From: Fimbriosthenelais zetlandica
Taxonomy: Eukaryota
Assembly (NCBI GenBank): GCA_977030845.1
Contig: OZ365113.1
Coordinates: forward strand, 36,952,001 to 37,016,000
Direction of reading: 5' to 3'
DNA length: 64,000 nt
The notes under the pieces were generated by a model. That model worked only from the letters and a program-made list of their open reading frames with translations. It was not told where the DNA came from and made no database searches. Positions 355 through 59,747 of the stretch are shown piece by piece (within the stretch, counting starts at the first letter, position 1; every line of letters begins with the position of its first letter). The translations under genes were made by a program, and so were the position numbers.

Positions 355-433
355 AGCCGGGTGGTCTAGAGGTAAGACACTGGCCTGGAAAGCCAGCGAC
401 CGGGGTTCAATTCCCCGTCTAGTAACTTTTTTT
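355..433 (+). pseudogene. tRNA-derived module (tRNA pseudogene/SINE head), anticodon-loop triplet GGA, followed by T7 Pol III terminator-like run
   Basis: A-box TGGTCTAGAGG; D-stem GTCT/AGAC; anticodon stem CTGGC/GCCAG; T-arm CGGGG-TTCAATT-CCCCG. Acceptor stem pairs poorly, and there is no long variable arm, so it is not a canonical tRNA-Ser. Confidence 0.7.
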
Positions 434-709
434 CTGCTACAGTGTTCGCTACATACATGTATTTATACAGCAGTGCTGGTGCCGGGGTTGGAGATGTGGG
501 TCAACGCGGTCTCGTTAATTATTTTTCTGATCCAGAATCCGTGTTTCCGGTAGATGGCGTCAGTGTCGTTTGGTGCTGGACTCTAACACTAGATGGCCCA
601 GAGTCGCTTGTTATGATAGTGTGTTGACAAACGGGAAAAATCAAAGCCCTAGTCAACCCTGTGAAGCCGTATCCTATAAATGTGTAGCGATCAAGAAGAG
701 TGAAAAGTA

Positions 710-781
710 TATGCAAGACTGGGAATCGAACCCCGGTCTCTCACGTGCCAGGCCAGTGTCTTACCCCTAGATTACCTGTCT
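710..781 (-). pseudogene. tRNA-derived module, anticodon-loop triplet GGC, anticodon stem degraded
   Basis: Minus strand reads TAATCTAGGGGTAAGACACTGGCCTGGCACGTGAGAGACCGGGGTTCGATTCCCAG: B-box GGTTCGATTCC, same family as 355-433. Confidence 0.65.
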
Positions 782-2154
782 CACAGATATCAAACTCCCT
801 TCGAATAGTCCACTGTGTCGGTACTGCCCATAGGTTCCAATGTTAAAAATTATTTAGCCCCCCGGACCCCTTCGCGGCCCCCAATCTCCACCTCCACCCC
901 CACATCTACCCCTGACACCCACCACAACTCCCTCCCAAAAATCCAGCCCGATTCGATGCTTCTAACCTGTCTTAATCCATTGGATTCTGCAAAAGTGTCC
1001 CGCCCATAGGCGCAATGTTAAAAATCACTCACGATTACATGGATGTGTGCTACAGAGCCGGTTTCCCAGTCCACTCCAATCGGCCTTTTCCCTATCTGAT
1101 ACGTATTATTTCCACTCAAACCCACGATTATGTATAGCTTATGACCTCTACTGTTAATTCGCAAAAGAGCAGAGATGGAAAATGAGGATAACCCCGACTT
1201 CTGCGAAGTTGTCAAATCGGCCGAGCGCATACCGGCCTATAATTTGGCCTTTTAAAAACCTTAACAGCGCCCTCTCACTAAAAGTCGAAAATGTTGAATA
1301 ACTCTGTAAATAATGGGCCTAAAATTACAATCTAAACGGATTATTCTTAGTTGAGAGCATCTCCAGATATGTATGTGGTTTTTGTGCAAATAAAATAAAT
1401 TTAAAATTTCGGATTTTGAAAATTTGTCAATTTGAGGTCTTTAGCATTGGGCTCTATGGAAGAGCACAAGCCAGCGCGACAGTGGCGACCCGAGAGCGGC
1501 GAAACGGTGAACTAGCCTGCAGAGATCTAGCCAACGCTCTCTATACCTGAATTTGATTCTATGGAAGGAGCACGCCAGCGCCACCGTGATTTCTAGCGGC
1601 CAAAGGGTGAAGTAGCCTAGTGAGATCTAGCGGGACGGAGTATCTGTCCCGGTGAGGCTGCTCGCTGGGAGGGAAGGCTTGTCATACAAGCTACATACAA
1701 GCTAGCGGCGTCATACCTTCACCCACCACCTGAGGGCGCCACTGTGCCGACAATTTAGCTTTCACCATGGACTTGGCTTGGATTCGTTCTCACAGATCTG
1801 GACACCTTGAAAAATGCCTCATTTTTGAAAATCGAAATTTTTAGAAGCAGTTTCCACATGTATTACTAATACCACCCATTAGAGAATGTCCCAACTAAGA
1901 TTTTCCATTTTGAATTTCTTATAAAGACCCAGTGGTTGCCGAGATATTAAAGATTTTCGGAATCAGAGTCGTGACACGGATTGTGCAAGTCCTTGTCCGA
2001 CGAGAAATGACACCCTCCTCTATTTCATGTTTAGCTTGATTCCAGTCGTGAGAGCCGGAAGTATGCGAGCGCCAGGCTTGGGCACATGCGCAATGAAGCA
2101 CGAGACCTAGCTTCATTGTTTTTATTGAATCCCAGATTGAGAGACAGACCTGTG

Positions 2155-2234
2155 CACTATGTAGTCTAGAGGTAAGACACTGGCTTTGAACGCCAGAGGC
2201 CGGGGTTCGATTCCCAGTCTAATCTGACATTTTT
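2155..2234 (+). pseudogene. tRNA-derived module, anticodon-loop triplet TGA, T5 run
   Basis: TAGTCTAGAGGTAAGAC (D arm), CTGGC-TTTGAAC-GCCAG (anticodon arm), CGGGGTTCGATTCCCAG (T arm); poor acceptor stem. Confidence 0.7.
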
Positions 2235-2328
2235 CTGTTCCATAGGTCGCTACATAATTAGAAGGGAGAGAGTGTGGAGAAGGGACCAAATAAATAATTA
2301 TGTAGCGAACTATAGAGCCGAAAAATTG

Positions 2329-2400
2329 AAGTTCAGACAGGGAACCGAACCCCGGCCGCTGGCGTTGCAGGCCAGTGCCTTACCTCTAGACTACATAGTG
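2329..2400 (-). pseudogene. tRNA-derived module, anticodon-loop triplet GCA
   Basis: Minus strand TAGTCTAGAGGTAAGGCACTGGCCTGCAACGCCAGCGGCCGGGGTTCGGTTCCCTG; D, anticodon and T stems intact, acceptor stem poor. Confidence 0.7.
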
Positions 2401-3099
2401 TACAGGTCTGTACCTCAATCTGGGATTCAATAAAAACAATGAAGCTAGGTCTCGTGCTTCATTGCGCATGTGCCCAAGCCTGGCGCTCGCACACTTCCGG
2501 TTCTCACGACTGGAATCAAGCTAAACATGAAATAGAGGAGGGTGTCATTTCTCGTCGGACAAGGACTTGCACAATCCGTGTCACGACTCTGATTCCGAAA
2601 ATCTTTAATATCTCGGCAACCGCTGGGTCTTTATAAGAAATTCAAAATGGAAAATCTTAGTTAGGATAATGTCTAGCGGGTGGTATAGGAAATAAATGCT
2701 GAAATAGCTTCTAAATATTTCGATTCTCAAAATATAGCTAATTTCACAAGGTGTCCCGACTCCAGCCCCGTTTCCAATCCAAGGCTGCGATCTCAGCTGA
2801 AAACCCGGCACAGTGGCGCCCTCAGGTGGTGGGTGAACGAGGGCCTATATGACGATTGGCGCAGAGGCCTGGGGTCTTTATGCTATGCTGGCTGGCGCAT
2901 AGTATTTCACGTTTCCGCCGCTAGGATATCTATTGAACTCTATGGAAGGACCAATCCAGCGCAACTGTAGCGACCGACATATGATGTGGGAGAACGGTGA
3001 ACTATGCTACTATAGCATTGAACTCTATGGAAGGACCAAGCCAGCGCGACTGTAGCGCCCCCAGATATGATGTGGGAGAACGCTGAACTATGCTTCTTC

Positions 3100-3478
3100 A
3101 GCTAAGATCAGAGCCTTGGATTGGAAACTGGGCTGGAGTCGGGACACCTTGTGAAATTAGCAATATTTTGAAAATCGAAATTTTTAGAAGCCGTTTCAGC
3201 ATTTATTTCTTATACCACCCGCTAGACATTGTCCCAACTAAGATTTTCCATTTTGAATTTCTTATAAAAACCTAGTGGTTGCCGAGATATTAAAGATTTT
3301 CTAAATCAGAGTCGTGACACAGATTGTTCACGTCCTTGTCCGACGAGAAATGACACCCTCCTCTATTTCATGTTTAGCTTGATTCCAGTCGTGAGAGGCG
3401 GAAGTATGCGAGCGCCTGGCCTGGCAGCTGCGCAATGAAGCATGAGACCATAATAGCTTTACTGTTTTTATTGACACC
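3100..3478 (+). mobile_element. Solo third copy of the element-2 arm, lacking the tRNA module
   Basis: 3130-3475 aligns with ~1800-2128 (gacacc...gaaaatcgaaatttttagaag...gtcgtgagag...ttttattga) and diverges roughly 25 nt before the tRNA module would start. Confidence 0.75.
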
Positions 3479-4384
3479 CGAGCTTTTGGCTGTACATGAT
3501 TGAAAAAGGTGATATAGGTTAGGCTACAACCAAGGATTCATGTATTTTAAAGTCTTTATTATCCAGACATGGAGGAGATAATGGTCCATAAAGATTATTA
3601 GAATAGAAGGAGTAGGCTATATAGGAACATGTAGGAGGGGTAGGTACATGTCCTCCGCTGGTCAGTGTGTGGTGGTGGTCAGCTGTGGTCACTCAGTGAC
3701 TCAGTGCTAGCCTTCTCTACATTCTGTTCAGTCGGCGACACTGGAGGCTGGAATAAAACAATACTGGTTTATACATATTACAGACATTACTATATAGGTA
3801 TAGATCATAAGTGGTAACATTTTTTTACTTTTAAATATTGCTGGCTTTATCAGATTTAAACACCCCACATTGGAAGTGCTTCCGTGGTCGATCCAGATGG
3901 GACTTCCCCCACCTCTGGAAAATTTCCATTTTTTTTCATAATCTAAAAAACAAATAGCACTGATCGCAAGCAATCTCTTGTCCCTTGCGACCTAGTGGAT
4001 GAACCCTATAAGGACAATTTTGAACAAAATAATATATATTCTGGTAAGTGGCGGATTTAGGATTTGATGTGGGGCGAAGTGTAAGGGTAGTAGGGGTCAC
4101 CGCCATGGTTCCATGATTCCATGGTAACCGACATGGTTAAATTATTGGCAGGGGCCTCGGAAGGTAGTTGATGTGTGTGTGATTTGATGTTGGGAGAAGT
4201 GTAGGTGTAGGGGTAGTATAGGGGTCACTGTGCACGCCTACAACATAATGTATACCACACACCTTTTCCCCATCTTTATGAAATGCACTTTTTGTTTCTT
4301 CAGTTTGGATTCTTTAAATTATACATATATGATAATTTCAGATACCAGTACCTGTAACAAGCAATGACTGTATTAGACGTTTCT

Positions 4385-5665
4385 CTAAGTGTAAAGTGTC
4401 TTATTCCTGCAAGCGTTCCAGTAGGTTGTGAAGTATTTTGGTTGTACCTCATGTATTGCCTTCCAGTTTTTGTTGTAATGACATGTTCTAATGTCAGCGT
4501 TCTCTTTAGACATTGATGGGTGTGGCCTCAAGTTAAACCCGGCTAGATTCATTACAGTCGCCTTCTTTGTACCTTTATACATCTCCTTCATCACTAATGC
4601 GAAATAAACATCCTCTATAACAAATATAGGAACATTTGGCGACGTTTTTATTATTTGAAGTGTCAAATTGTGGGACGTTATAAAAGTTGTACCTGTACAA
4701 TAAGGAGGGAATGTTTTATTCGGGTATTCATTCCAGGTTATGTACCATTTGGACGTGACTGAGCGAGCTGGTCTTACCCCTATGTAACATTCTCCTATGA
4801 TAACCGACTGTAATTTCTCTCTGTGTCTGTTGACTAGTCCAATGATATTCGGTACATTGAGAAAATTATCATCAGCTGTTCTCACCACAAAGCGCGCCAT
4901 GTTGCAATGTTTCTTGAACCAATGATATCCACCAAGGACTTTGATGGAGAGATTGAAGTAAGAATCGATATAGTCATCCTGCTGTATGTCACCAAATTCT
5001 CTAGCTTCAGCGTCCAATATTTTCTGCTGGTCAGTGGGCCAGCCTGCCCCAAACAGAAAGATGTGCCTTGATATATTACCAGTTATTTGCTTGCTAAATG
5101 AAGTCCAAGTTTGACGAATGACCTTTCTCTCAGAAACAGCACGAGGCACTGTCGTTATCAGCAGTAGAATATCCACTTTTGAGAGTCCATCACACACTTT
5201 GGGGACAATTATTTTTTTATATTGGTATTTGAAACAATTGTTACATTCATTTTGCCTCACATGTCTTGGATACGTCCTTTGCCACAAATACTTATGACCT
5301 CTGAGAAAACGTATTGCAGAGGGCAAATAACCTTCGGAGTTTTGATCCCGTTTCCATGGCATAAATCCATCTTTAGGCAGATCTTGCTTTATATTTCCTC
5401 CATGTTCTGATCTGTTCCCTATGCTTCCTAATTTGGTGACAGTTTTTTTCATATGTACATAGTATCTTTTCATATTTTCCTTGATAACTCGGGTATATTG
5501 GTTTCCTCTTTTTTCCAGATTTTCAAAAATGGATAGGAATGGTCGAGGAGTATTATGTTTCGTTCTCATAGTGTGATCTTGTGATCTAAGTAGAATCACA
5601 AAAAAAGAAAAGAATAATATAAAGGCTAGGAGCAGACGGTAACTATATTTTCTGTCACATGCCAT
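4385..5665 (-). CDS. GT31-family beta-1,3-galactosyltransferase-like type II membrane protein, copy 1 (426 aa from MACDRKYS; in-frame upstream ATG at 5701 would add 12 aa)
   Basis: Single long ORF; N-terminal TM helix (LLLAFILFFSFFVILL); GT31 motifs R..IR.TW, HIFLFG, D..QDDY.DSY.NLS.K, (A)DD, P..KWY, FPPYCTG, EDVYF. Splice acceptor ttttattcctaccag| precedes the ORF (exon start 5732). Confidence 0.9.
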   Translation of the reverse strand: MACDRKYSYRLLLAFILFFSFFVILLRSQDHTMRTKHNTPRPFLSIFENLEKRGNQYTRVIKENMKRYYVHMKKTVTKLGSIGNRSEHGGNIKQDLPKDGFMPWKRDQNSEGYLPSAIRFLRGHKYLWQRTYPRHVRQNECNNCFKYQYKKIIVPKVCDGLSKVDILLLITTVPRAVSERKVIRQTWTSFSKQITGNISRHIFLFGAGWPTDQQKILDAEAREFGDIQQDDYIDSYFNLSIKVLGGYHWFKKHCNMARFVVRTADDNFLNVPNIIGLVNRHREKLQSVIIGECYIGVRPARSVTSKWYITWNEYPNKTFPPYCTGTTFITSHNLTLQIIKTSPNVPIFVIEDVYFALVMKEMYKGTKKATVMNLAGFNLRPHPSMSKENADIRTCHYNKNWKAIHEVQPKYFTTYWNACRNKTLYT

Positions 5666-6150
5666 ATTCCATTCATTTAATCCTGTGGTAGGCCTGATCA
5701 TATATATTATGTGTCCATCCTCACCGGATGATCTGGTAGGAATAAAATCCCCGTAGACACTCCACTACTTATAGCCGGGACCTGCGTCCCACTCTCCTAC
5801 CAATAGGCTTGGAGCAGACAGTTCCCTCAACAGAGTGTATTATGTATTTATTATACGCATTTGTTATGAGAACGGGTTATTTCATGTATGACATGCAGTG
5901 CCATTAAAACATATTATGTGATATGGCCTGGTTCCATGGTAACCGCCTCGCATGTCCGGAGCTTAATGTCAGTGGATGGCGTGAAAAATACTCCAGATTG
6001 CATGGAAATAAAATACAATATATCCCAAAATTAGTATTGGCAGGGGCCTCGGAAGGTAGTTGATGTGTGTGTGATTTGATGTGGGGGGAAGTGTAGGTGT
6101 AGGGGTAGTATATGGGTCACTGTGCACGCCTACAACAGACTGTAGGCCTA

Positions 6151-6710
6151 TACTATGGAAACGCAAATGTAACCATAACTCCCGAGATGCGAAATCGGGA
6201 AATTCGTCCAGGTTCCGGACTTCGGGAAGCCGAAGTCGGGTTTCCGAAACCCGATATCGGGTTTCGGCAACTAGCTGGGTAGACCCGAGACGCGAAACCG
6301 GGCCAGAAACCCGAAGTCGCCATTGAAATTGCACTGTAAACCCAAAAGCCGAAACCCGGTTTCGCATCTCGGGTCTTCACTGCTAGTTGCCGAAACCCGA
6401 TATCGGGTTTCGGCAACCTGACTTCGGCTTCCCGAAGTCCGGAACCGGGACGAATTTCCCGGTTTCGCATCTCGGATTTTGTCCACTTTTTAGGCCTCGC
6501 CTGAATCCGAGTATTTTCAAAAAATGTTCCGGGCTTGGGGAATCCGAAACCGGGTTTCGGGATGCCGAAACCGGACTTCGGCAAGACCCGAGATGCGAAA
6601 CCGATATCGGATTTCGGAAACCCGATTTCGGCTTGCCGAAGTCCGGATTCGGGAGTAAATTCCCGGTTTGACATCTCCAGAGTTATGGTTACATTTGCGT
6701 TTCCATAGTA
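6151..6710. mobile_element. 560-bp MITE with terminal inverted repeats and TA target duplication (Tc1/mariner-type signature), internally built from ccgaaacccg/cgggtttcgg sub-repeats
   Basis: TIR TACTATGGAAACGCAAATGTAACCATAACTC / GAGTTATGGTTACATTTGCGTTTCCATAGTA flanked by TA at 6149-50 and 6711-12. The paralogous flank at ~4240-4262 is an empty site. The short ORFs here are repeat artefacts. Confidence 0.85.
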
Positions 6711-6848
6711 TACCACACACTTTTCCCCCATCATTATGAAATGCACTTTTTGTTTCTTCAGTTTGGATTCTTTAAGTCATACATGTGATAATTTCAGATA
6801 CCAGTAGGGGCCTACCTGGAGCAAGCAATGACTGTATTAGAAGTTTCT

Positions 6849-8072
6849 CTAAGTGTAAAGTGTCTTATTCCTGCAAGCATTCCAGTAGGTTTTGAAGTAT
6901 TTTGGTTGTACCTCATGTATTGCCTTCCAGTTTTTGTTGTAATGACATGTTCTAATGTCAGCGTTCTCTTTAGACATTGATGGGTGTGGCCTCAAGTTAA
7001 ACCCAGCTAGATTCATTACAGTCGCCTTCTTTGTACCTTTATATATCGCCTTCATCACTATTCCAAAATAAACATCCTCTATAACAAATATAGGAACATT
7101 TGGCGACGTTTTTATTATTTGAAGTGTCAAATTGTGGGACGTTATAAAAGTTGTACCTGTACAATAAGGAGGGAATGTTTTATTCGGGTATTCATTCCAG
7201 GTTATGTACCATTTGTGTTTCGCTGAGCGGACTGGTTCTGCCCCAGTATAGTCACATTCCCCAAAGATAACCGACTGTAATTTCACTCTGTTTCTGTTGA
7301 CTAGTCCAATGATATTCGGTACATTGAGAAAATTATCATCAGCTGTTCTCACCACAAAGCGCGCCATGTTGCAATGTTTCTTGAACCAATGATATCCACC
7401 AAGGACTTTGATGGAGAGATTGAAGTAAGAATCGATATAGTCATCCTGCTGTATGTCACCAAATTCTCTAGCTTCAGCGTCCAATATTTTCTGCTGGTCA
7501 GTGGGCCAGCCCGCCCCAAACAAAAAGATGTGCCTCGATATATTACCAGTTATTTGCTTGCTAAATGAAGCCCAAGTTTGACGAATGACCTTTCTCTCAG
7601 AAACAGCACGAGGCACTGTAGTTATCAGCATTATAATATCCACTTTTGAGAGTCCATCACAAACTTTGGGGACAATTAAATTTTTATATTGGTATTTGAA
7701 ACAATTGTTACATTCATTTGGCCGCACATGTCTTGGATACGTCCTTTGCCACAAATACTTATGACCTTTGAGAAAACGTATTTCAGAGGGCATATAACCT
7801 TTAGAATTGTGATCCTGTTTCCGTGGCATAAATCCATCTGTAGGCAGATCTTGCTTTGTATCTCCTCCATGTTCTGATCTGTTTCCTATGCTTCCTAATT
7901 TGGTGGCAGTATTTGTCAGTTTTTCCAAGATGGATATGATTGGTCGAGGAGGATTAAAAATATGTTTCGTTCTCATAGTGTGATCTTGTGATGTAAGTAG
8001 AATCACAAAAAAAGAATAGAATAATAGAAAGGCTAGGAGCAGACGGTAACTATATATTCTTTCACATGCCAT
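6849..8072 (-). CDS. GT31-family beta-1,3-galactosyltransferase-like protein, copy 2 (407 aa)
   Basis: Tandem paralog of 4385-5665 with the same motifs, a stem region 22 aa shorter, and the same conserved acceptor (exon start 8140). The upstream ATG at 8107 is cut by a TAA. Confidence 0.9.
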   Translation of the reverse strand: MACERIYSYRLLLAFLLFYSFFVILLTSQDHTMRTKHIFNPPRPIISILEKLTNTATKLGSIGNRSEHGGDTKQDLPTDGFMPRKQDHNSKGYMPSEIRFLKGHKYLWQRTYPRHVRPNECNNCFKYQYKNLIVPKVCDGLSKVDIIMLITTVPRAVSERKVIRQTWASFSKQITGNISRHIFLFGAGWPTDQQKILDAEAREFGDIQQDDYIDSYFNLSIKVLGGYHWFKKHCNMARFVVRTADDNFLNVPNIIGLVNRNRVKLQSVIFGECDYTGAEPVRSAKHKWYITWNEYPNKTFPPYCTGTTFITSHNLTLQIIKTSPNVPIFVIEDVYFGIVMKAIYKGTKKATVMNLAGFNLRPHPSMSKENADIRTCHYNKNWKAIHEVQPKYFKTYWNACRNKTLYT

Positions 8073-8439
8073 ATTCCATTAATTTAATCCTGTGGTAGGC
8101 CTGATCATATTATATTATGTGTCGATCCTCACTGGATGATCTGGTAGGAATAAAATCCCCGTAGGTCACTCATGTCCCATTCTCCTCCCAATAGGCTTGG
8201 AGCAGACAGTTTCTTCAACTTTGGTCAAAGAGTGTATATATGTAGGCCTATCCTACAGTAAATGTGTGCGGGGAGGTCGGGGAATGATAGCCTATGTAGG
8301 CCTATTGCCAAGATGGCATATGAAACAGACGACATGTAAAAAAGAAGTTGCATGTATGGCATATTTCCCATCAAGCGTACAAGATCTTTATACCCCCCCC
8401 CCCCCCCCAGTATATGGTTTGGCCCCCGACCAAAATATC

Positions 8440-8662
8440 TAGCGTGGGATAATTATGCTTATATTCGCCTGAAAGATTGACATGCTTCACATCGCTTCTA
8501 AATGGCGCTGGACATCGGCCTTACAGGTTGGGCGGCAAATGAGCTGGCGTTGTAACGGTTTGATCAAGTTAACGCAGGTCTGTGTTTTACTGTTTTCAGC
8601 CGCTCTGGGCGCCAAGATTTGGACCCGCAAAGAAAGACGTGAAATCCACATTATCTTGTATT
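8440..8662. promoter_or_regulatory. Probable bidirectional promoter region between the head-to-head GT31 copy 2 and APEX2
   Basis: GC/CpG-enriched stretch between divergent genes whose starts are ~590 bp apart; inferred from position only. Confidence 0.4.
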
Positions 8663-11600
8663 ATGAAGATCCTCACGTGGAATATCAATGGTGTCAGGGC
8701 CTCCAAGCTTCCCCTGAAGACAGTTTTTGATGGATTGGACGCTGATATAATTTGCCTGCAAGAGACAAAAATTACGCGTATGTAGGCCGCGCGCTTCCAG
8801 TCTCCAGATTTTTGTTTACATTTTGCCGGGCGGGCCCCTCTCCCATTTATTTTATGTCAGGACGTTGTAGATCCAATAACGTCATAGAAAATAACCTAGG
8901 ATACAATAATATACCGTACCTAGATGGTGACTTTATAGGGCGAGTTATTTCCAGGGCGAGATGTGAGGATAGTGGATTGAGCGATATTAGGTGCATGTTC
9001 CATAGGCAGTAGGCCAAAATTCACATCCACTATAATAATGTTCGGATTTCCCCTCAAATATTTATTTTATTTTATTTACAGGTGATATGTTAGACGAGAA
9101 GACTGCCATTGTTGATGGCTATAGTTCCTATTACAGCTTCTCAAATACTAGAACAGGATATTCAGGTCAGTATTATTTTGTGAATTGATAGGCTCAATAT
9201 TTTCTTGATACACTTCTCTTCTTTCTTTCTTTTTTTAAATGTATTGACTTGTATTGTATAGATTTGATCTATGACTATATGGGCCGCTGTAAGTCACTTG
9301 AATTTATGTTTTTTTTACTGGATGAGTACGAAATATAATGCATAAGCCTTGATATTGAAAACAAATTCAACTTACTTGTATAAATAACTTGATTCCTTAC
9401 CATGTATTAAGTTGGTGGTGTTTTAACTGCCAGGTGTCGCTACATACGTCCGGGATGACTCAACGCCGGTCAAGGCGGAGGAAGGATTATCAGGAAGGTT
9501 GAGGGGGGACGAGGAGGCAGCCATTGGTCATTATGGTGACCACTCGGACTTCACTGAGGAGGAACTGGACGGTCTGGACAACGAGGGACGTACCATGATC
9601 ACCCTGCATAACATCAAGTTTGTTCATCAAAATCAATGTCCTAACTTGTAAAATATCATAATCCTATTATAGTAACCGAGATCAAGTCATAGTGAAGAGC
9701 TTCATGTAGGTTTATCCTTAAATTAAGGGTTTCTTGAAAATTTCAGGAAAATGCACAAAAAAAAATTACTTGAAAGTCAACTCCTGTCATATTGGAAGGA
9801 TCCCTCCTAGAATAATGATAAAATAACGAAATCTCAATTCATGTAGGGCCTAAAAAGCATCAAGTATTATAATTTTTGTCCTGAAAATTAGGAACTTTGG
9901 TCTCATCAAACGCTACAAACAATGCTCGGCATTACCATCCAGTAAAAGCTGTGCGTATTTTAAGTGAATTTGTTTGTAATTATATTAAATATTGGCACTT
10001 GTATACCTTGTACAGGTGGGGTGTGGAGGAGCAGCGCCTGTTAGCAGTCATCAATGTCTACTGTCCACGGGCGGACCCGGAACGTGAAGACCGTAAAGCC
10101 TTCAAAGCGCGCTTCTACCAACTCCTGCAGATCCGAGCACAGACCCTCCTCACATCTGGCTGGTACGTGAAAACATCCCAGGTGGGCGAGGTTCTGGAAA
10201 CATACCTCCTCCCCAAAATAAATTCCAACTGCTGCACTTTTGATTCCCAACAGAGTTCCCAGCATTTCATGGTCATGATTTTTTAGAAATCCAGGATGAT
10301 TTGAAACCTCTTCAATTATGCCTAACTTAGACGGAAAAAAGGGAGAATATTTCCCCTGATTTTCTTGGAGGGCTTGGAAATCTGTGAACCTACCTGTTAA
10401 ATTGAAATTTTACATTATAAGACATTTCAAAGTGCAATGTGACATTTATAATAGTATAAAACTAGTATTCAAACTTATAATAGTATTAAACTAGAGCTGT
10501 GTGATTCTGTATTTAAATGAATGTTTTCTCATTTCAGTCACGTTATAATACTCGGGGATGTTAATACTGCACACAAGCGTAATGACCATTGTGACCCTGA
10601 AGACCAAGATGTAAGCTTTAACTCCTACACAACCATCCCCACCTTTCTACACCATTATTAACCTTTTCCTTAATAATTAATTTAATGACAGGTAATTTCT
10701 CGATTAAGCAGTATGTCTTACGCATTCATATTGTAGTATTGTGAACGAAATTTAACCATAAACAAAATGATCAAAGTATTTTCCTTTCTTTTGCTAATAA
10801 AAATATTGTATTAATTAATTTTAGGACTTCGTCAAGAACCCAGGCCGGCAGTGGTTAGATCAACTACTTTGGACACCGCCGGTAAAAAGTAGTAATGAAA
10901 GTGACCAAAACCAAACAGAAAAACAAGAAAAATCATTGATAGAAACATACCAGGAAATAACGGAGGAATCATCGGACCATCTGTTTGTAGATACATTCAG
11001 GTATTTCTACCCCAACAAAACAAACATCTACACGTGCTGGAACACAATGAAAGGCTGCAGAGAAACCAACTTTGGTACAAGAATTGATTACATTCTGGCT
11101 GATAAACGACTGGCCGTTGACATGTGTACAGATTGTGTTATCCTGGGAGAGGTGATGGGGTCAGATCACTGCCCCGTTAAGGCTACATTCACATGCCCCT
11201 TAACACCAGCTAAACGCCTGCCTGCCTTATGCACCAGGAACTTCCCCGAGTTCGCAGGCATTCAGACCAAACTCTCAGCATTCTTTACCAAAGGTACCAA
11301 GAGACCTCATCTAGAAAGTCCAAACAAACAGGATGTGAAAAACAGTTCATCAAACGATTCACAAATTCAGAATCCTTCTGAAAAACAACCACCCCTCGTC
11401 AAATCCTCCACCTTACCCCCACCAGCAAAGAAGCTGAAAATTGAAAAACAAAACTCAGGGAAAAAACAGAGCAGCCTTGCTAACTTCTTTGGGAAGCCAT
11501 CTAACAAGTCTCTGACATCTTCTGTAAAAGATCAGGAAAAACTGGACAAACCAAAACAGACTGAAAGTGGAACAACCGCCCTGGTTACTCCAACTGTTTC

Positions 11601-11904
11601 TGCGGATTTGACTGAAACAAAAAAAGTGGAAAATCAAAGTAAAGATAGTTTAGAGAAGCCAAAAGTGGCGAGCGCTGCGTGGAAGAACCTTCTAAAGGGT
11701 CCACCCCCGGCCCCCAGGTGTAAGGGGCACGGGGAACCATGCCTGCTACGGACAGTCAAGAAGGAGGAGAGTCTAAACAAAGGTCGTCAGTTCTACGTGT
11801 GCTGCAGGCCTGACGGTCACAAGTCAGACCCACAGGCGAGATGTGATCACTTTGAATGGGTAGACAAGAAAAAGAAACCTCCACAAATGTCAAAATCTAA
11901 ATGA
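8663..11904 (+). CDS. APEX2: DNA-(apurinic/apyrimidinic site) endonuclease 2; exons 8663-8777, 9082-9165, 9434-9617, 10016-10162, 10538-10610, 10825-11904
   Basis: ExoIII/EEP motifs MKILTWNINGVR, ICLQETK, GYSGVAT, INVYCP, GDVNTAH, RIDYIL, GSDHCPV; PIP box QSSLANFF; C-terminal zf-GRF (CKGH...C...N.GRQFYVC...C). All introns GT-AG with consistent phases. Confidence 0.95.
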
Positions 11905-12534: not shown

Positions 12535-12658
12535 GTATACATGTTTGACAGATGTATACATGTTTGACAGATGTATACATGTTTGACAGATGTATACATA
12601 TTTGACAGATGTATACATGTTTGACAGATGTATACATGTTTGACAGATGTATACATGT
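12535..12658. repeat. 19-bp minisatellite (atgtttgacagatgtatac) x ~6.5
   Basis: Units start at 12541, 12560, 12579, 12598, 12617, 12636. Confidence 0.95.
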
Positions 12659-13084: not shown

Positions 13085-16000
13085 TCATTGACTTGGATTC
13101 ATGGCGTTCCATAATATGGCGTGGCCATCCGTGTGAGTTACTGGTACGGTATGTTGAAAATCAGAGTCGAGTAAACTGAGCGCCATAGATTGAGGTGGAG
13201 CCAGGCGGCAGTCCATGTTAGTAGGTGCTGCCATCTGTGGGTGAGGTGGTTGAGGTGGGGGTGGGGGGTGGGGATGATGATGATGGTGATGGTGATGGTG
13301 GTGGGGTTGGGGTTGTTGTGGTGGTTGTTGTTGTGGTTGTTGTGGGGCATGTTGCACCTGTGGTGGTGGAGGTGGAGGTAGTGAAGGTGTAGGTGTTGCC
13401 GCTGGTGGCGCCATGGGTGCTGCTTCTGATACAGTAATAACAGCAGCAGCGCCGTCTGAGCCTTGGTTGGAGAGTTTATGAACTAAATGCTGGTTGCTGG
13501 GTAGACTGAGACCGTGGACTTTCTTCATGTGAAGTCTCAGGTTGCCCTTCACGTTGGTACAGTAACTGCAGGCTGTACACGCCCAAGGTTTGTAATTCTG
13601 AAATAATAATTTAAATTTTTTTTTATATTTCTGAATAATAAAATCAGTCAAAAGTCACCATTGGTCATGCCAAATTAACAAGTTGTTGCAGATGAACTGC
13701 GTTATATCGGCAGGTAAAAATATTTTTTTAAAGAATGTTTAAGATATACTTACCCTATGTTCATGCATTCGGTCAATGTGTTTCTGCATCGCTCGCTGTC
13801 CATAACAAGCCTTGCAGGCGTAGCTGCAGCCGTCATACGGACAATTCAGCCAGGCATTGTCTTAGAGAGAAAAAAAATATTTATAAATAAATTTAAATTA
13901 AATTTAATTGAATATAATTCTGATCTATATGTCTAATCGTTTCTTAGAATATATCAGAAGGATTTCCTTGGATTCCGTCGATATTAAAATTAATTTACAT
14001 TTAATACCCATAAAGATTTTGCAGTAGAATTTAGTTTAGTGGCGTGTACATTCTGCATGTAAGATGAGTTATTTGACTTACCAGTGGCGTGTACATTCTG
14101 CATGTAAGATGAGTTATTTGACTTACCAGTGGCATGTACATTCTGCATGTAAGATGAGTTATTTGACTTACCAGTGGCGTGTACATTCTGCATGTAAGAT
14201 GAGTTATCTGACTTACCAGTGGCGTGTACATTCTGCATGTAAGATGAGTTATTTGACTTACCAGTGGCGTGTACATTCTGCATGTAAGATGAGTTATTTG
14301 ACTTACCAGTGGCGTGTACATTCTGCATGTAAGATGAGTTATTTGACTTACCAGTGGCGTGTACATTCTGCATGTAAGATGAGTTATTTGACTTACCAGT
14401 GGCGTGTACATTCTGCATGTAAGATGAGTTATTTGACTTACCAGTGGCGTGTACATTCTGCATGTAAGATGAGTTATTTGACTTACCAGTGGCATGTACA
14501 TTCTGCATGTAAGATGAGTTATTTGACTTACCAGTGGCGTGTACATTCTGCATGTAAGATGAGTTATTTGACTTACCAGTGGCGTGTACATTCTGCATGT
14601 AAGATGAGTTATTTGACTTACCAGTGGCGTGTACATTCTGCATGTAAGAGGAGTTATTTGACTTACCAGTGGCGTGTACATTCTGCATGTAAGATGAGTT
14701 ATTTGACTTACCAGTGGCGTGTACATTCTGCATGTAAGATGAGTTATTTGACTTACCAGTGGCGTGTACATTCTGCATGTAAGATGAGTTATTTGACTTA
14801 CCAGTGGCGTGTACATTCTGCATGTAAGAGGAGTTATTTGACTTACCAGTGGCGTGTACATTCTGCATGTAAGATGAGTTATTTGACTTACCAGTGGCGT
14901 GTACATTCTGCATGTAAGATGAGTTATTTGACTTACCAGTGGCGTGTACATTCTGCATGTAAGATGAGTTATTTGACTTACCAGTGGCATGTACATTCTG
15001 CATGTAAGATGAGTTATTTGACTTACCAGTGGCGTGTACATTCTGCATGTAAGATGAGTTATTTGACTTACCAGTGGCGTGTACATTCTGCATGTAAGAT
15101 GAGTTATTTGACTTACCAGTGGCGTGTACATTCTGCATGTAAGATGAGTTATTTGACTTACCAGTGGCGTGTACATTCTGCATGTGGACTCGCAGATCGC
15201 GCGCTGTAGATGACTGACGTCCACACACGGTACACTGGAACTTTTTGGGTCCTAGAAATAATAGAAATGTAGACACTGAATGAACATATGTCTGACAAAT
15301 TAAGTTATTTCCTGTCCAATATGACGACAAATCCTCAAATCAAAGGACCTCTGACCACCGCTACAGTCGACATTTCCTCGCATCTTAATCATAGTAATAC
15401 GGACACAAAAGTGATTTCACAAATTCACTGAGTTTTCCCAAACATTCTCTGTCCAATCTAAAAATGTCCCGACTTCTCCCTGACCTTGAAAGAAAACTTT
15501 ATCTAATGGCAACCCTGATTGATATTAAAATATTAATTTGGTAAGCTATCTTGTGTATACATTATGAAATAGGAAGTAAATGTAATGATTTATAAGACAG
15601 ACCATGTCGAGCAATGTGGTCCCTCAGCTTGGCCTGGGAAGGATCCGAGTAGTCACAGTGAGGGCAGCTAGTCCTGAAAAATACAAACCACAAAACCAAA
15701 ACTTAACAATTTAATTAAGTGAATATTTCCGACAATTCCACTATCCTACATAGACATATTAATTAAATAATAATGCTGTTAAGTGTTTATAAATACCCTG
15801 CGTTTCAACAGAGAAAATTAATTGTATTCTCCCATAATTAACTCACCTATGTTCTAGACTTTCCTGCTCGACGGGAACCTCCTTGTGTTTTTTGAAGACA
15901 TGTCGGCGTAGAGCATTGCTATCAAAGCATCTGTAGGGACATTTCTCACACAGATACGGCTTCTTAAGTTCGTGAACCCGCCGGATATGAGTCTGAATGT

Positions 16001-17588
16001 GAGGAAAATTAATTATTATAAAGTAACATTTATGATATTAATCCAGAAATTCGATGAGAAAAGTTAAGTTAAATTAAAAATATTCGCAATCTTTGGATTT
16101 GTGAAGTTGGATTACATTGAAGATAATTTATTTATTATTTGTTTGCAGAAAAAAATGTTACCTTTAGTTGAGCCGTTGACTTGAAGTCTTTTAAGCAGAT
16201 GGAGCATCGTGCGGGGGTGAATGACTTGTGGACAAACCTCTTGTGTTCAGCAACGCAAAAACTGTTAAACGAAAAGTAAATATTTAGAACTAAAACTATA
16301 GTATTGAATTGTATTATTCGAAAGGCGCTAAATGACATTATAAAGTAGACGAGATATTTTTTAATAATTCGAATAACGATTGTGACAAAGTTTTAAGAAT
16401 GTTACCTTGACTGATACTTCTTGCCGCACACCTCGCACACGACTCCCTCGTCCATGTGTTTTCGCTGGAAGTGACTCTCAATACTTGAGTTATAAATAGA
16501 CTTGTAGTCACATCCCTCAATCTGAAAACATGTCACAAAATGATCACAAAATGCCCAAAGATCTTCCTGACGACTGATTAAATTTTAACAATCTGAATTA
16601 TTTAAATTTTAAACAGAAGAATTCTTGAAAAAACTAGGTTCATCGATAAAAAAAAAATAATCTAGATTTTTAAAAATGCTCCGGAATGAAGGTTTTAAAG
16701 GTTGGCTATCCAAAATAAAATTTTGAAGTCCGGTTTTATCATTATTTAAAAACATTGAAGACGCACCTGGCAATAATACCACTCCGGTTCAGGCATCCCC
16801 TCCCTGTAATGTTCAAGCACTCGATGCGCCAACAGTTGTTTGGGTCTTTTAAACACCTCGTCACACTCAGTACATCGATGTCTCCTATGGGCGTGCATGA
16901 CTTCCCTGTGTTCCTGATACCCAGCTAATGTATCAAATGTTAAATGACATGTTGTACACCGCCTACTCCCCTTAGGTCCTCGCAGTTTCTTCCGAGCACC
17001 CCTGCTTTTAATCTTGATCGACTTATTGGAAATACTGCTTTTTTTCTTTTTAATTCTGGTAGTTTTCTTTTTGGGTTCTGGCTCTGGCTCATCGTAACTG
17101 TCATGATCGGCGGACCAGTCGTTGTCAGAATCATCGTGTATTTCAGACTTGACCTGGTCAGGCACCTCTGTACCTGGAAGCACCTGTGGTGTAACATCAG
17201 TAGAGATGATAGCCGAGTTCACCGCCGAGTCTAACCCTCCAAGTAAAGCACCACTCTCAGTCTCTTTCTTACAGAACCTAATCCCCTCTGGTATCTGTAA
17301 ATCTTCACAGATCTGCATGAGGGCGGGATCTTCCTCTTTGGTGGTTCCTCGATATATGATCTCCACGACAGCCTGTAGCTGGGTGAAGTTCACCTTGGGT
17401 ACAGTCAGGGTTTGGATGTATTCATCCTCAGAGAGCAGAGCGGCCTGGAAGTAGGGGGAGCTGGCTGAGGCTATGAGCTTGTGAACGTGGATAGACTGGC
17501 CATCGTCGGTTTGTAAGAAGAGGTCACAGAGTTTACTCGACTGCTGGAACTCCCATAGTTTGTCACGCATACTCCACGGCGGGTCCAT
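13085..17588 (-). CDS. BTB/POZ + ten C2H2 zinc-finger transcription factor (ZBTB-like) with C-terminal Q/P/H-rich tail; coding exons 17588-16767, 16521-16406, 16261-16162, 15992-15847, 15673-15603, 15251-15162, 13860-13754, 13597-13085
   Basis: BTB motif (LCDLFL...IHVHKLIASASSPYF...LQAVVEIIYRG); ten Cx2-4C...Hx3-5H fingers assembled across GT-AG introns with matching phases. A noncoding 5' exon is implied by the acceptor at 17623. Confidence 0.9.
14038..15186 (-). repeat. 45-bp tandem array (~25.5 copies) copying the exon/intron junction of zinc-finger exon 6; contains 25 G|GTAAGT 5' splice sites
   Basis: Minus-strand unit GTAAGTCAAATAACTCATCTTA + CATGCAGAATGTACACGCCACTG. Donor GT at 14081+45k (k=0..24). 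Translates as GKSNNSSYMQNVHAT in the gene frame. Confidence 0.97.
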
Positions 17589-18363
17589 CCTCACAGGTGA
17601 GGTCCGATCCAAACTTGACAAGCCTGAAATGAGAGGTATATAAAATAATTCATGTTTTATTTCATAGCAAAAGGTCTTGGAAGAAAAGGAAGGGAAAAGG
17701 TCATAAGATGTTTCAGGTTTATTCCAGCTCAAACTAATTTTTGCACCTAATAAAATTTAATACAGATGGTCCATAACTCTTATCTGAGAAGCCTTTAATA
17801 TAAATAATTAGTCAGCATTGCATTACTCCCATTAGGTTTAGTTTATGACTATCTGACTTAGTCGGAAGAATACTGTGAACCGGAGGGTGCGAAGAGGATT
17901 GGAAAGTGAGCTGCTCGAACGAGATTATCAGTCCCTGAGTCTGACACAGACAGTGACAGAGTGCCCCGACTTGCGGTAGCTCATGCTCACATAATTACAT
18001 GTTTATGAGATAGAGAGGAACCGGTCTGCCTTTGATACATGAATTACAGTTCAGAGACACCGTATTCATCAATATATTGTGGAATAAAGCCATGGTAATC
18101 AGTATATCAACGACAACATGCTTCTGGCTGCCCTGGACGATCACAATAGACTGAGCGATAATAGGGGTTCATAGAAAATACGATGGTAAGACATGGACAT
18201 TAAGATGCATACAAGATCACTGATGTTGAAAACAAGTACTTTAGTATCGGTACTGCATACTTAACTATCTTAATTATGACAATAACACAAAATAACAGCA
18301 CAGTCTTACTTGAATGGCCTGGTTTAGCGGACCGCTGTTTGCGGCAGGTGGCGCTTGGGTATG

Positions 18364-18388: not shown

Positions 18389-19017
18389 AAGTAGGCTGGG
18401 ATGGGATTCCTGCAGCTATGGACGCTTTTCATTGATCCATTTCATGCTTTACTGCTAACTATTCTACGCTTTTAGGTTCGTATCAAGGTTTGATTTCTAT
18501 AATTTCTGTTTACAAGCTTTCCCCAAGTGTATCTGATTTGTTGTTCAGTTGGTGATTGCTATTTCAATGTATATTTTATCATTGGATCCCATCTGAAATG
18601 CCGGTTGTTGGTCTTGTTTACTACTGTCATGACATGTCTGTAAACTGCAAAACAGAGCAGGGCCTCTCAATATCTGAGTCATTCTCTGGCATGAATGATT
18701 AATACCTTTGGCTTTTGTTAGGCCTACTTTATTACTCAATATCAGCATCCAGTTTACTTTAAGCATAGATAGGCAGGCTCTAGTTTATAAATATTTAAAT
18801 TTTCTATCCAATTGTTGTCATGCTTGTTCCATTATTCCAAGATTAAAAGTCACCATTTGATTCTAAAAATGTGTCTTTTTCTTCCAGTTATTCCTCAGAG
18901 GAAGTAGAATTTCAACTGCTCAACGCCATTCAATTGCCACATTGGATCCTAGCCTACTCATCAACTGCCCCTCACTGAAGCCTACCCATCACTGTGACTC
19001 ACAAATAGACCAGGAAT

Positions 19018-19590
19018 ATGGGGTTCTTTTCCAAACTCTTCCAGTTCCTTGGTGTGAAGAAAAAAGAAGCCAATGTCATTGTAGTAGGCCTTGACAACTC
19101 TGGTAAAACCACCATCTTAAACCACCTCAAGCCAGAAGAGTCCAAAGCCCAGGAGGTCGTCCCGACTGTGGGATTTAACGTGGAGAATGTCACCCATCAG
19201 AAGTTATCACTGAACGCTTTTGACATGTCCGGCCAAGGACGCTATCGTAACTTGTGGGAGCACTACTATAGAGATTGCCAGGGTATTATATTTGTCATCG
19301 ATGCCAGTGACAAGATCAGGATGGCTGTTGTCAAGGATGAGCTACTAGAGCTGATGTCTCATTCTGATATCCAGGGACGTCGTGTACCCATCCTTTTCTT
19401 TGCTAATAAATCGGATATCCGCGATTCTTTGTCCAGTGTGAAATGTTCCACCTTATTGGTACTGGAGTCTATACGTGATAATCCATGGCATATCTGTGCT
19501 AGTAATGCCATAACCGGTGATGGACTGAGCGAAGGCATGGACTGGCTAGCTGATCAAATCATTGCCGGTATGTCTAATTCTAAAAAATGA
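19018..19590 (+). CDS. ARL6: ADP-ribosylation factor-like protein 6 (BBS3), 190 aa, intronless CDS
   Basis: MG N-terminus; P-loop GLDNSGKT; PTVGF; [16 protein letters not shown]; ANK.D; PWHICAS.A..G.GL.EG.DWL, which is ARL6-diagnostic. Confidence 0.95.
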
Positions 19591-20751
19591 AATCTTGTAT
19601 TAATAATGATAATAATACATTTTCTGTTTTCCATTATGTAAAGGCTAGCTTCAATTTAAATGTCTGCCACTTGAGCGTTGTCACCCCTTCACATTCCATA
19701 TGTTTTACAAAGGTTTTATTTTGTATTTTGTTGTATCAATGTGGAAAAAGGTGGCTTCTCAGCTATTTGAACAAGGCTTGTTCCATGTCCATTCAATGAT
19801 ATATTTTCTTAATGTAAAATGCTCAGCAGTTGATTTATAATATTTGAAATTTAGTTATATTCTCAAATCGTGTGATATGAATAGCAGCAATACTTGGAAA
19901 GAATTTCTCAGTTAAATATGAATATTTCAAGTGTCCAGACCTAAAGGTTTTCTTCCTTCGTCCATCTTGAGTATTGCTCTTAACAAATAAGAAATTCTAG
20001 TTATTGTTATAGACAGAAGAATTGCGTCAGTATTATGTAAGATAGAATTACAATCGCGATTCTTCAACTGTTAAAGTTAAGGTAATTTGCTATGCAAGTT
20101 CATTTAATCTGGCGAGAAATGGGAAAGGTGATCCCAAGGTCTGAAAGATTGTATCAAAGAGAAATGGCATTTATCTCTCACCCTAAGATTCATAGATGTT
20201 ACAACACTTGATTCTTATATTGTATGTCAGTAAATACTAATGCACCGTCCAATTATACATTGTCTTGTACAGTACTCATATAATATATCCCTCAATAACA
20301 ATATCTCACTCGTGATATTCACTCTGTACTGTCTGTTATAACAGTTCAGATTATTTTGAAACTTTCCGAGCCAGAGAAGATTTTAGCATGTGTTCAATTT
20401 GTGAAAATAACTGGTGATGTTTTCTCTCCGTCCAAATTATCATATCCTCCTTAACTACTTAAGTGACTTGATGTATTTTTGAGAATGCATGTTATTCACC
20501 AGTGGTCTAATCAACTGTGTAATCACCATCTACACACGAACATTTATTGTAATGCATGATTTCAGTGAACCTGAAGAAATGTAATACCGGTATCCTCTAT
20601 ATTATGATTAAACATTGTCAGTCACGTTACTCATTTTATGTTTCATTTCTTTAAACTTTGAGTGTATCGCCCTCTAAAACACAGATTATGCATACCGGTA
20701 CTAGGATATATTGTAGTACACATTGTTCCTATAAATGAGAAAATAACATCC

Positions 20752-21318
20752 TTACCTTGCATTGGCGGCCATCTTGTCACGTTGTAACGGGTAACTGGGT
20801 AAATCTCACACCATTTCCTCGTTAGTTCTCCTTTTCCCCGGTGCTGGCGGTGGCGTACTGGTTGGTGTCTCAACAGTGTTACAGCTCTTCCATCGATGCC
20901 ATCTTGTCACGTTGTAACGGGTAACTGGGTAAATCTCACACCATTTTCTCGTTAGTTCCCCTTTTTCCCCGGTGCCGGCGGTGGCGTACTTGTCCGTGTT
21001 TCAACAGCTCTACCATCGGCATCGATGTTTCCTTACTTACTTAGCATTGGCGGCCATCTTGTCCCGTTGTAACTGGTAACCGGTTAAATCTCATACCATT
21101 TTCCCGTTAGTTCCCTTTTCCCCCGGTGTCGGCGGTGGCGTACTTGTTGGTGTCTCAACAGCAGCTGCTCTACCATCGATGTGCCCTTCCTGGCTTAGCC
21201 ATAGATGGCTTAGCATTGGCGGCCATCTTGTCACGTTGTAACTGGTAACTGGGTAAATCTCACACCATATTCCCGTTAGTTCCCCTTTTCCCCGGTGCCG
21301 GCGGTGGCGTACTTGTGG
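20752..21318. repeat. Four-copy tandem array of a ~130-170-bp GC-rich unit between the convergent ARL6 and MAGI 3' ends
   Basis: Core gccatcttgtcacgttgtaac...ccttttccccggtg.cggcggtggcgtact starts at 20768, 20898, 21053 and 21222. Confidence 0.9.
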
Positions 21319-21429
21319 CATAAGTCCAGCTTCTTAACTGTTAACTCAGCAATGATTGGCTCAAAAAATAAAGTTAATTAACGGTAAAAGAAACGACATG
21401 AAAGGTGAATATATAAGAAATAGGTAAAT

Positions 21430-21435
21430 TTTATT
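21430..21435 (-). terminator. Candidate poly(A) signal for MAGI (would imply a ~3.6-kb 3'UTR)
   Basis: AATAAA on the minus strand just before the tandem array; other sites are possible. Confidence 0.3.
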
Positions 21436-24400
21436 AGGATGGGTTATTCTTGCATGATACAGTCAGTATTGCAGCCACCACGGAACGGTGATCTGAGAAA
21501 ACAACAAAATGTTTATATAGAAAAAATGAGGTCGTCTTCAGACCACAGTTACAGCAGAGTTGGGTGAGGGATGATACTTTATACACAGCTCCATAATAAT
21601 GGCTATACTTCCCACCTTCCTTCTCTTAACACATACTTCAAATTTACAATCACAGGTCCAGGGTCAACCCTGATGATCTGCAAGTTAAAAAAGACCAAGC
21701 AAATAACACATATCCCTGTGTTCTTTCTAATTACAATATGAACAAATAGTTCCATTTTACCAACCCAAAACATTGCATTCTCAATATCGAGAAGCCAACG
21801 ATCCATCCATCAATTATTAATCATTTTTCTAAAAAAAGAAAGTTGATTTAATTATCCTAATGCTGGAGGCATTAGTGTAATTATAGATCTACATGGAGAG
21901 ATACACTGGTGACTGTGATATCAAAGTCAGCCATCAACAACGATGACATGTCTATAATGGTATCTGTAGTTAATGGCTATTCACAAAGAATGGGTTTCCC
22001 AGTGTTGTAGTGAACAAAAACAAGGTATAATCTATGTACAAAACGCGGCGGGAACAACCCACCTCACACATGCGACATTTTTTTGCCATTCACCGCAATA
22101 TAATCTGTATATTAAACAACGCTTATACAGCAACTCGTTCTCTTTCTGTAAAGTAACTACAGTAATACATGGCTAATAGTAACTAAACGACTAAATATTT
22201 ATTATATATGCACTGTGTACAATAATTACATAGAAATGTTGGTGTGTATTCTACAGCCTAGTCAACTGATATTAAAGAAAGACTGCGTCATGCAATCCAT
22301 TTATCTAAACAAAGCATATTCTACATATGATCAATACATGCGTTGTCTTCTTCTAAAGGGTCGGGTGGATTATTAAAAGGTAGCATTATATATAAACTAA
22401 ATAAATGCATATTTCTACTTAGATCTGTTTCTTTGCATACAAAATTAATAAGATTTTACAATTAAAGATCACCAGCACTTGCTGGGCTGGTCCAATCACA
22501 AGGCACACATGCGCACTACACCCACTTCCGATGTTTATAGCTTTTAACATCACAACGTTTTTGATGGGAGGGAACAAGTCATACACTAAGGTCCTCGTTT
22601 ATAGGCCTCTTGTAATAGATTAGGGACCCAGGGGGACACGCGTGACTATCAGTATAGAGTAATTATAATTAGAATGCTCATGGCATTTACACTGTAAGGT
22701 AACATGCTCGATCAGTCTCACAGAGGGATCTAGAATCTGTAGATTAAGTACAAATCAGTAGAATCAGGAACCATTCTATCTACTAGATTGATTGGAGCCC
22801 TTCCCATAATATGAACTCTGATATCGATTTGATGTTGGATTTTTACAAATATATGAATCACCAGGCTTCATTTTTGTCTGAGGTGAAAATCTAAATAACT
22901 TTAAGATGTTGAGTACTATTTACCAGTGCCTGATGGAGTGCTCATCAATCCATTCTATTGTAAGATTCAGCTGATGAGTGAGGTTGATATGTTACATGTA
23001 AGATGATGATAAAATTCCAGCCAGACAGGACCGTGGTCCCTTCTATAACATGATATTTGAGGGATCTTATTATTATAAATTCAGTTCTTAATTCTACTTC
23101 TATTATTATTAAATCTTGAGAGGTCATTTTCAGACCCATCCATATCATGATGTACATGTACATGAGATTTCTTAGATATATATGTATAACATCTAATGAA
23201 GGCAAGGTCTTATAATAGTGCAAAACAGATGCTATCATGATGGGTTTCTCTACTTAGTTCTTCGATACAAATGAGAATTCTAAACAATATACATATGTTT
23301 AGATACCTATACAGCGTAACGAATATATCCAATACTCATTCACTGCATTATGTCCCTCTTTTTTTCCATACATGACCATTTAGCACTTGAGAAGCTATTT
23401 AACCAATCTATTCACCGCCACAGACCACTCGACCACATCATGCTGACTAGAACGGTGCTACTACAACAAGGAGGGTTCTCACAATAGCTGCCTAACACTA
23501 TAAATGTGGTTCATTTGAAACAAAACAAAAATGTCTCAAAATTCAATCGAAAACTCAGTTGTTAATAGGTGTAACATACTAGAAGGTTTTCCAGATATAA
23601 ATACTTTTTCAATCACTCATATCTCATACAAACTCCGCATAAGTCTTGTTAAATGAATCTAAAGTGAACACAAAATGCTGTCCATGAACTAACTCAGGAA
23701 TATCATTTGTTTCATTACTCACAATACAATTTCTTATCACTCAGAAATAACATTACTTTACAATTTACATTACTTATAATTTTCCATGTAATTCCTAGGC
23801 ATTTCGAGTATAATTTGTAACTCAGTAATGGGCCTTTTTGTGCCATTGTATAATGGGAATGTAAAATGATTTTTGCTCACAAAAACCAACCCTAGATTGA
23901 TTCATAATCATTAATGTATAATTGATTTAAGCAGCCAAGTGGGGTACAATTCATTAAAGGGAAACCATTTTCAGAAAAGGAATCAAACTTATCCTGAAAT
24001 TGTTATGCCACAAACATACAAGCACTTCGTTTGAGGTAGGTTAGAACTCAGTTTCATTTCTAATAAATATATTTTTGATGTGAAAGTGACTAATTGGGCC
24101 TAAACAGGAGTACCAACAGACATATAGAGCCACATTTAAACGTTATCACTAGCCATAACAGAGAACTAGTATAGTACATAGTAAAAGGTCGGCGGTGTTG
24201 GTGACAGATACCCAGGCTCAATATCCAAGATCATCAACTATAACACTAAACGTCCTTGGTCTATCTCAAGCTGGGATGATCAGTAACAATGGTAAGAACT
24301 CTCGCTTGAAAGACTATTCCCCTCCATGGCAAACAATTAGATTAGGATTGTGACAACACTGTTCTATGTACACCGGTAATGTGAGAGAGTGAAATGTCTC

Positions 24401-25011
24401 TAGGCCCTATAGTTTAACACTGATGTGAGTATAGTATAGTAGTAGTATGGATAGTAGCAGTTACATTGGTAACAGCAGGCACTTAGCAGATAACGTCTCC
24501 ACAACCTCTCAGTACGTGTCACCAGCAGTCTCTACAGTCTGCAGAATATAACATATAGGAAAATTGATCCCTCTTCAGTTTTTTAAATATTCTTCTTTGA
24601 AAAATGATGCTGTCCCATACTCCGTGAAAGAATGTAACAAATATGTCTATATAGAACAGAAATATAGTCGTCCATCACTGATAATATTCTTGTAGATTGT
24701 AGATTAACAGGAGAGACTGCAGTGTTCGTTGATTCAGTCAACAAGGGAAGTTTTAAAACATTTAGTTCCTAGCGCACTCACATGGAATCGTCCCAGCAAC
24801 TGTATTTTGTATACACACCTCAATAGGTTTTAATGACATAAATGGCTCAACCAATGTTATATTGACTATATACAGAGATAATTCTCACATTATCGGATGT
24901 CATGTCTCGAGGAAATATATATATAATATATATTGCTTTGTGTAGGTCCATTTAGATGAGATAGGGAGGTAATCAAGTCAGCATGTTGATTCCTCCTGTG
25001 TGGGTATGTGT

Positions 25012-59747
<34,736 letters not shown>

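Follow-up and report, generated by a model that had tools for sequence, protein, structure and literature searches.

A very young minisatellite made from the exon 6/intron 6 junction of a BTB zinc-finger gene reiterates its donor 25 times in frame, with the first donor tentatively proposed to dominate splicing

The window, by which we mean the whole 64-kb stretch of DNA analysed, contains on its minus strand a BTB zinc-finger gene of eight exons (Table 1), whose spliced model codes for a protein of 654 aa if the first of the donors described below is used. Pfam places a BTB/POZ domain at residues 62-157 of the exon-1 ORF (PF00651, E=2.2e-17) and C2H2 fingers C-terminal to it (PF00096 in exons 1 and 6, PF13909 in exon 8), and ten C..C/H..H motifs are legible in the spliced model. 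An earlier note, made from the letters of this DNA, had assigned finger 8 to exon 6 and finger 9 to exon 7 of such a BTB zinc-finger factor, and both the gene model and Pfam bear this out. Six of the introns are 144-351 nt long, while intron 6 measures 1301 nt from its first donor and 221 nt from its last. Donor strength was judged by the number of consensus matches, since U1 duplex energies, in which G-U pairs inflate weak sites, separated strong from weak sites poorly and were set aside; by that count the donor of exon 6, which matches eight of nine consensus positions, is the best of the seven in the gene. The last exon carries a long Pro/Gln/His tract (13190-13400, minus strand), including a run of ten histidines, in which Tandem Repeats Finder (TRF) reports imperfect repeats of 12-24 bp. 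Furthermore, a few hundred bases past the stop codon comes a 19-bp x 6.5 tandem repeat (12535-12658, 98% matches), probably in the 3' UTR of the gene or just outside it.

On the other side of the start codon, at a distance of 1.4 kb and in divergent orientation, an intronless ARL6 gene (BBS3-type Arf-like GTPase, 190 aa) occupies 19018-19590 of the plus strand. Its best match, with 88% amino acid and 75% nucleotide identity, comes from the Logan runs ERR14368245/48/49 and ERR14707600, the named matches are from molluscs and annelids (64-70%), and an exact look-up of the protein returned no record. The named matches place the genome among the lophotrochozoans, with annelid and mollusc not separated by the search. 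A 28-kb contig of this nearest relative (L002, positions 308-10791) is syntenic with 19013-29370 of the window over about 10 kb and ends 312 nt upstream of ARL6, short of the zinc-finger gene. Within this stretch, conserved blocks of 150-180 nt with 85-88% identity, separated by gaps of 0.36-1.5 kb, look like the exons of a neighbouring gene, and a 169-bp x 2.6 tandem repeat (20898-21316, 82% matches) is found downstream of ARL6. ORFs on the plus strand (9897-11904), which converge on the zinc-finger gene at its 3' end, encode the C-terminal part of an endonuclease/exonuclease/phosphatase domain and a GRF zinc ribbon, and look like an APEX2-type AP endonuclease.

Table 1. Positions in the window of the BTB zinc-finger gene, its exons and the elements of the repeat array.
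Feature	Position	Strand	Basis
Host gene, 8 exons: BTB/POZ domain, 10 C2H2 fingers, C-terminal Pro/Gln/His-rich tail	13085-17588	minus	Pfam, spliced model with intact ORF
Exon 1	17588-16767	minus	splice-site reading and translation
Exon 2	16521-16406	minus	splice-site reading and translation
Exon 3	16261-16162	minus	splice-site reading and translation
Exon 4	15992-15847	minus	splice-site reading and translation
Exon 5	15673-15603	minus	splice-site reading and translation
Exon 6, 90 nt, zinc finger 8 (CTVC...HMQNVH), ends at first donor CTG/GTAAGT	15251-15162	minus	gene model; homologous exon of L001 has same length and phases
Exon 7, 107 nt, zinc finger 9 (CPYDGC...HIDRMH), acceptor common to the 25 donors (phase 1)	13860-13754	minus	gene model, joins
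Exon 8	13597-13085	minus	splice-site reading and translation
45-bp x 25.5 minisatellite, exon-6 end and intron start	14038-15185	minus	TRF, unit listing, pattern search
24 full extra units, each with a repeated donor (last exon base from 15117 down to 14082)	14082-15161	minus	unit listing, computed joins
25 motifs resembling a 3' splice site (TCATCTTACATGCAG/AAT), one in each unit; first 'exon' base from 15132 down to 14052	14052-15132	minus	computed joins
221-nt intron if last donor used: truncated unit, unique intron, T-rich polypyrimidine tract ending AAG	13861-14081	minus	sequence, gene model

Among the 11 tandem arrays in the window, one straddles the end of exon 6. By a rough inference from this density, many overlaps between arrays and donors would arise by chance in the genome if 1-2% of it lay within the reach of a unit from a donor. 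TRF describes it as a single array with a period of 45, 25.5 copies, 98% matches, 0% indels and a score of 2254, and on the minus strand each full unit consists of the last 23 nt of the 90-nt zinc-finger exon 6 and the first 22 nt of the intron. The exon ends ...CAC ATG CAG AAT GTA CAC GCC ACT G and continues with GTAAGT, and the array closes with a truncated 26th unit (...GCCACT/AAAC) without a donor. A script search of the minus strand found GGTAAGT 25 times inside the array, with the last exon bases at 15162, 15117 ... 14082 in constant steps of 45 nt; the next occurrence past the array is the exon-7 donor at 13754. The nine-base donor CTG/GTAAGT is identical in all 25 units. Both the composition of the unit and the count and spacing of the donors are as the earlier note had described them, now supported by TRF and the unit listing.

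Across the 25 units (1125 nt) there are no indels and six substitutions, which represent three distinct changes: the synonymous CAC>CAT (array units 3, 14 and 22), the synonymous TCA>TCC (units 7 and 11) and AAT>GAT (N>D), seen in unit 21 only. The units are thus ~99.5% identical, with ~0.5% divergence from the consensus. When the 45-mer was searched with up to three mismatches, its 25 occurrences in the array were the only ones in the 64-kb window, where shuffled sequences lead one to expect 0. The gene frame is open across the whole array, each unit being translated to GKSNNSSYMQNVHAT. The 24 full extra units are intronic with the first donor in use and code for 24 x 15 aa with the last. An origin of the unit as a dispersed repeat, or as one carried by a transposon, was considered and rejected, as its copies in the window lie only in the array and its exon half codes for the essential finger histidine. 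Likewise, the predominance of synonymous variants (five of the six variant sites) was rejected as a sign of translation, because only three distinct mutations underlie it and the bias is not significant.

We computed the joins of all 25 donors to the acceptor at 13860, and every one of them gave a CDS whose length is a multiple of three and whose only stop is the terminal one. The resulting proteins would have 654+15k aa, from 654 to 1014 aa, with introns shrinking from 1301 to 221 nt, and the insert contributed by downstream donors, up to 360 aa, would fall between fingers 8 and 9. These computed joins uphold what had been claimed of the stop-free unit, of the phase-1 compatibility of every donor and of the range of insert and intron lengths. 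The context from -23 to +22 is the same for all 25 donors apart from the six scattered substitutions, and therefore only position can choose among them. Additionally, RNA folding of the first four units (z = 0.29) predicts no structure that would hide these sites.

The repeat also brings with it a possible kind of non-productive splicing that was absent from the earlier note, since each unit contains a 3'-splice-site-like motif with pyrimidines at 10 of 17 positions, compared with 7-13 of 17 in the real acceptors of the host gene. If a donor were joined to one of these motifs, 29+45k nt would be removed, the frame would shift and translation would stop at residue 454. Each repeat moreover has the shape of a 29-nt 'mini-intron' from donor to CAG, with TAAC and CTTAC as branch-like motifs. 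By our own estimate, the chance that a junction-derived unit is in frame and stop-free is about 0.2 (1/3 x ~0.62, the latter for the seven intron-derived codons; a figure of 0.37 for 15 random codons was computed alongside the composition), and this property hints weakly at tolerance or use of downstream donors.

The closest homologue of the zinc-finger gene that we found is a protein (P0001) on a locus of an ENA assembly (L001), with 40% identity over exon 1 and a first exon that ends at the same point. ARL6 is not adjacent to the zinc-finger gene there, and for this reason we speak of a homologue and not of a proven ortholog. Its finger-8 exon (17960-18049) is exactly 90 nt long, has the same phases and ends in one donor (G/GTAGGT), and no tandem repeat was found at the homologous junction of this one distant homologue. 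Inspection of the junction in another species thus shows the exon and its phases kept and the array not found. A word search with exon 1 gave no match, and an exhaustive HMMER search of a representative library with the same exon gave nothing above 40% identity, so that this library contains neither the species nor any near relative.

Since the homologue carries one donor at the end of its matching 90-nt exon and lacks the repeat, the first donor (15162) is the ancestral one, and six substitutions in 1125 nt together with the lack of indels point to a very recent array. The exon half of the unit codes for the second His of finger 8, from which it follows that the unit derives from the gene junction and not the reverse. 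The array very probably arose when a 45-bp segment straddling the exon-6/intron-6 junction was duplicated in tandem, whether by replication slippage or by unequal exchange. For this structural and historical part taken alone, namely a very young minisatellite made from the exon-6/intron-6 junction, we are highly confident.

Which of the 25 donors is used can be approached from cases in which donors are repeated. A class of minisatellites in which the exon-intron boundary lies within the first monomer has been described (Borensztajn et al. 2006, PMC1557585). According to the same source, LMNB2, PDGF and F7 use the authentic donor alone, CBS uses its first three donors, and IFI6, as it is summarised there, uses the authentic donor and only the next two of the 25 pseudo-sites that follow it. 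In F7 minigenes, downstream sites raised to a Shapiro-Senapathy consensus value (CV) of 91 were silent, and only perfect-consensus sites competed (PMC1557585). By contrast, in model substrates with strong duplicated donors nearly all splicing uses the copy closest to the 3' splice site (Hodson et al., PMC3413131). These upstream and intron-proximal preferences are reconciled by Carranza et al. 2022 (PMC9225289), in whose work on donors of equal strength intron definition (short introns) makes the downstream one win and exon definition (long introns) the upstream one. In the gene described here, the first donor closes the conserved 90-nt exon, an exon-definition unit, and the last donor opens a 221-nt intron of a length typical of the gene, an intron-definition unit. 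Such position rules would predict no even ladder of products and at most a competition between the two ends.

We propose that splicing would be dominated by position and not evenly spread, with the first donor most likely still defining the conserved 90-nt exon and the next one or two donors perhaps serving as minor sites. The array would thus lie mostly within the intron and be close to selectively neutral, and its copy number would probably vary. The first donor is put ahead because every natural precedent points to the upstream end and because an intronic array, which can grow without any change in the protein, expands without cost. An intron of 1.3 kb is moreover not unusual in this genome, given the spacing of 0.36-1.5 kb between the conserved exon blocks of the neighbouring gene. 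Several points count against the first donor: the shared -23 to +22 context means that local sequence cannot separate pseudo-donors from the authentic one, the donor is strong, and all the splicing precedents are mammalian. Dominance of the first donor is accordingly a tentative claim to which we give slightly less than an even chance, and the full statement, a young junction minisatellite together with first-donor dominance, also falls a little short of even.

The most serious competitor is the last donor (14082), which would dominate if U1 occupied all 25 strong sites and the site nearest the 3' splice site paired with it across the 221-nt intron. The array would then effectively be coding, with an exon 6 of 1170 nt and a 1014-aa protein in which a 360-aa Ser/Asn-rich linker separates fingers 8 and 9. 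Such an outcome would agree with the near-exclusive use of the intron-proximal copy of strong duplicated 5' splice sites (PMC3413131) and, in a gene whose other introns span 144-351 nt, with the downstream preference under intron definition (PMC9225289). The in-frame, stop-free unit and the synonymous nature of five of the six variant positions point the same way, though the in-frame property has its estimated one-in-five probability by chance, and two synonymous changes among three distinct ones are not significant. Against last-donor use, PMC1557585 reports no natural junction minisatellite that behaves in this manner, and each step of the expansion would have changed a finger linker. Furthermore, a search of a collection of 5.8 billion proteins with the 446-aa ORF through the array gave three word candidates, none of them significant, so that neither a protein nor a transcript-derived ORF with the repeat was found there. 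On balance, we consider dominance of the last donor unlikely, though well worth keeping in mind.

The same protein search and the same position rules, which favour one end, also weigh against appreciable use of many donors, that is, a ladder of linker lengths tuned by splicing factors and by heritable copy number. In its support, all 25 joins are in frame and would escape nonsense-mediated decay, the donors are identical over the -23 to +22 context, IFI6 (as summarised in PMC1557585) and CBS use more than one reiterated donor, and the locus straddles both recognition regimes with its 90-nt exon and 221-nt intron, so that at least a bimodal use is conceivable. However, the known cases use at most three donors, all of them at the upstream end (PMC1557585), and the arrangement is not conserved, the L001 homologue having one donor. 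We regard a ladder as improbable; in the form in which several of the 25 donors, or the first and the last in a two-peaked manner, would be used and the finger-8-to-9 linker would grow in 15-aa steps over a range set by heritable copy number, its chance would be small. It is this interpretation that the earlier note had favoured: the structure on which it was built stands, and the graded isoform rheostat, conceivable as it is, is unsupported and runs against most precedents (PMC1557585, PMC3413131, PMC9225289). Outcomes other than use of the first, the last or several donors are quite improbable. Finally, the copy number or the whole expansion could have been created in assembly, or could represent a rare allele, somatic or individual, of a gene that typically has one or few units, seeing that near-identical 45-bp units are hard to assemble and that one assembly is the basis. 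The six substitutions are nevertheless spread non-periodically and the 45-nt unit is perfect throughout, which is easier to reconcile with a real array than with one collapsed or inflated in assembly, and we hold an artefact or rare allele to be very improbable.

For now, the locus adds a lophotrochozoan example to an arrangement that has been known from human genes since the 1990s. It is also a natural experiment in which 25 strong in-frame donors in near-identical context lie between a 90-nt exon and a potential 221-nt intron and in which, all joins being in frame, nonsense-mediated decay hides no product. Mammalian cells have yielded the position rules of upstream scanning and of intron-proximal preference, and the locus bears on whether these also apply to an animal most of whose introns are short. 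Should downstream donors be used, the gene would be one of the rare DNA-binding proteins with a linker that copy number can tune.

In WT1, the +/-KTS forms come from a choice between two conserved donors, 9 nt apart and used in a regulated ratio, that lie between zinc fingers 3 and 4. The likeness, drawn in the earlier note, is that donor choice here would also alter the linker length between two C2H2 fingers. The analogy fails on conservation, since the array offers 25 young, unconserved predicted donors 45 nt apart, in units ~99.5% identical, whereas the closest homologue (L001, distant at 40% identity) has one donor and no repeat. Closer relatives are found among the human junction minisatellites. 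In IFI6 (6-16), the minisatellite at exon 2/intron 2 has a first unit that spans the boundary and about 25 identical pseudo-donors after the authentic one (Turri et al. 1995, as summarised in PMC1557585); the same summary gives the authentic and the two nearest pseudo-sites as used there, and the present array differs in having a 45-bp (15 aa) unit between two zinc fingers. CBS intron 13 (31-bp unit), LMNB2 (100-bp) and PDGF (81-bp) likewise reiterate the junction inside the following intron (PMC1557585), none of them in a zinc-finger linker. The 37-bp VNTR of F7 intron 7, the model in which the choice among copies has been studied best, is a polymorphic array with the junction in its first monomer and with identical donors in competition for a single acceptor (PMC1557585). 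It has a weak donor (TGG/GTGGGT, CV 74), four exon bases per unit, a unit that is not a multiple of three and 5-9 copies, and uses the most upstream site only, whereas the array described here combines a strong donor with 23 repeated exon bases and an in-frame unit. With its head-to-tail arrangement, its first unit carrying the authentic exon/intron boundary and its identical downstream donors, the array is, judged by its structure, a member of this known class of minisatellites reiterating an exon/intron junction, of the IFI6/CBS/F7/LMNB2/PDGF type.
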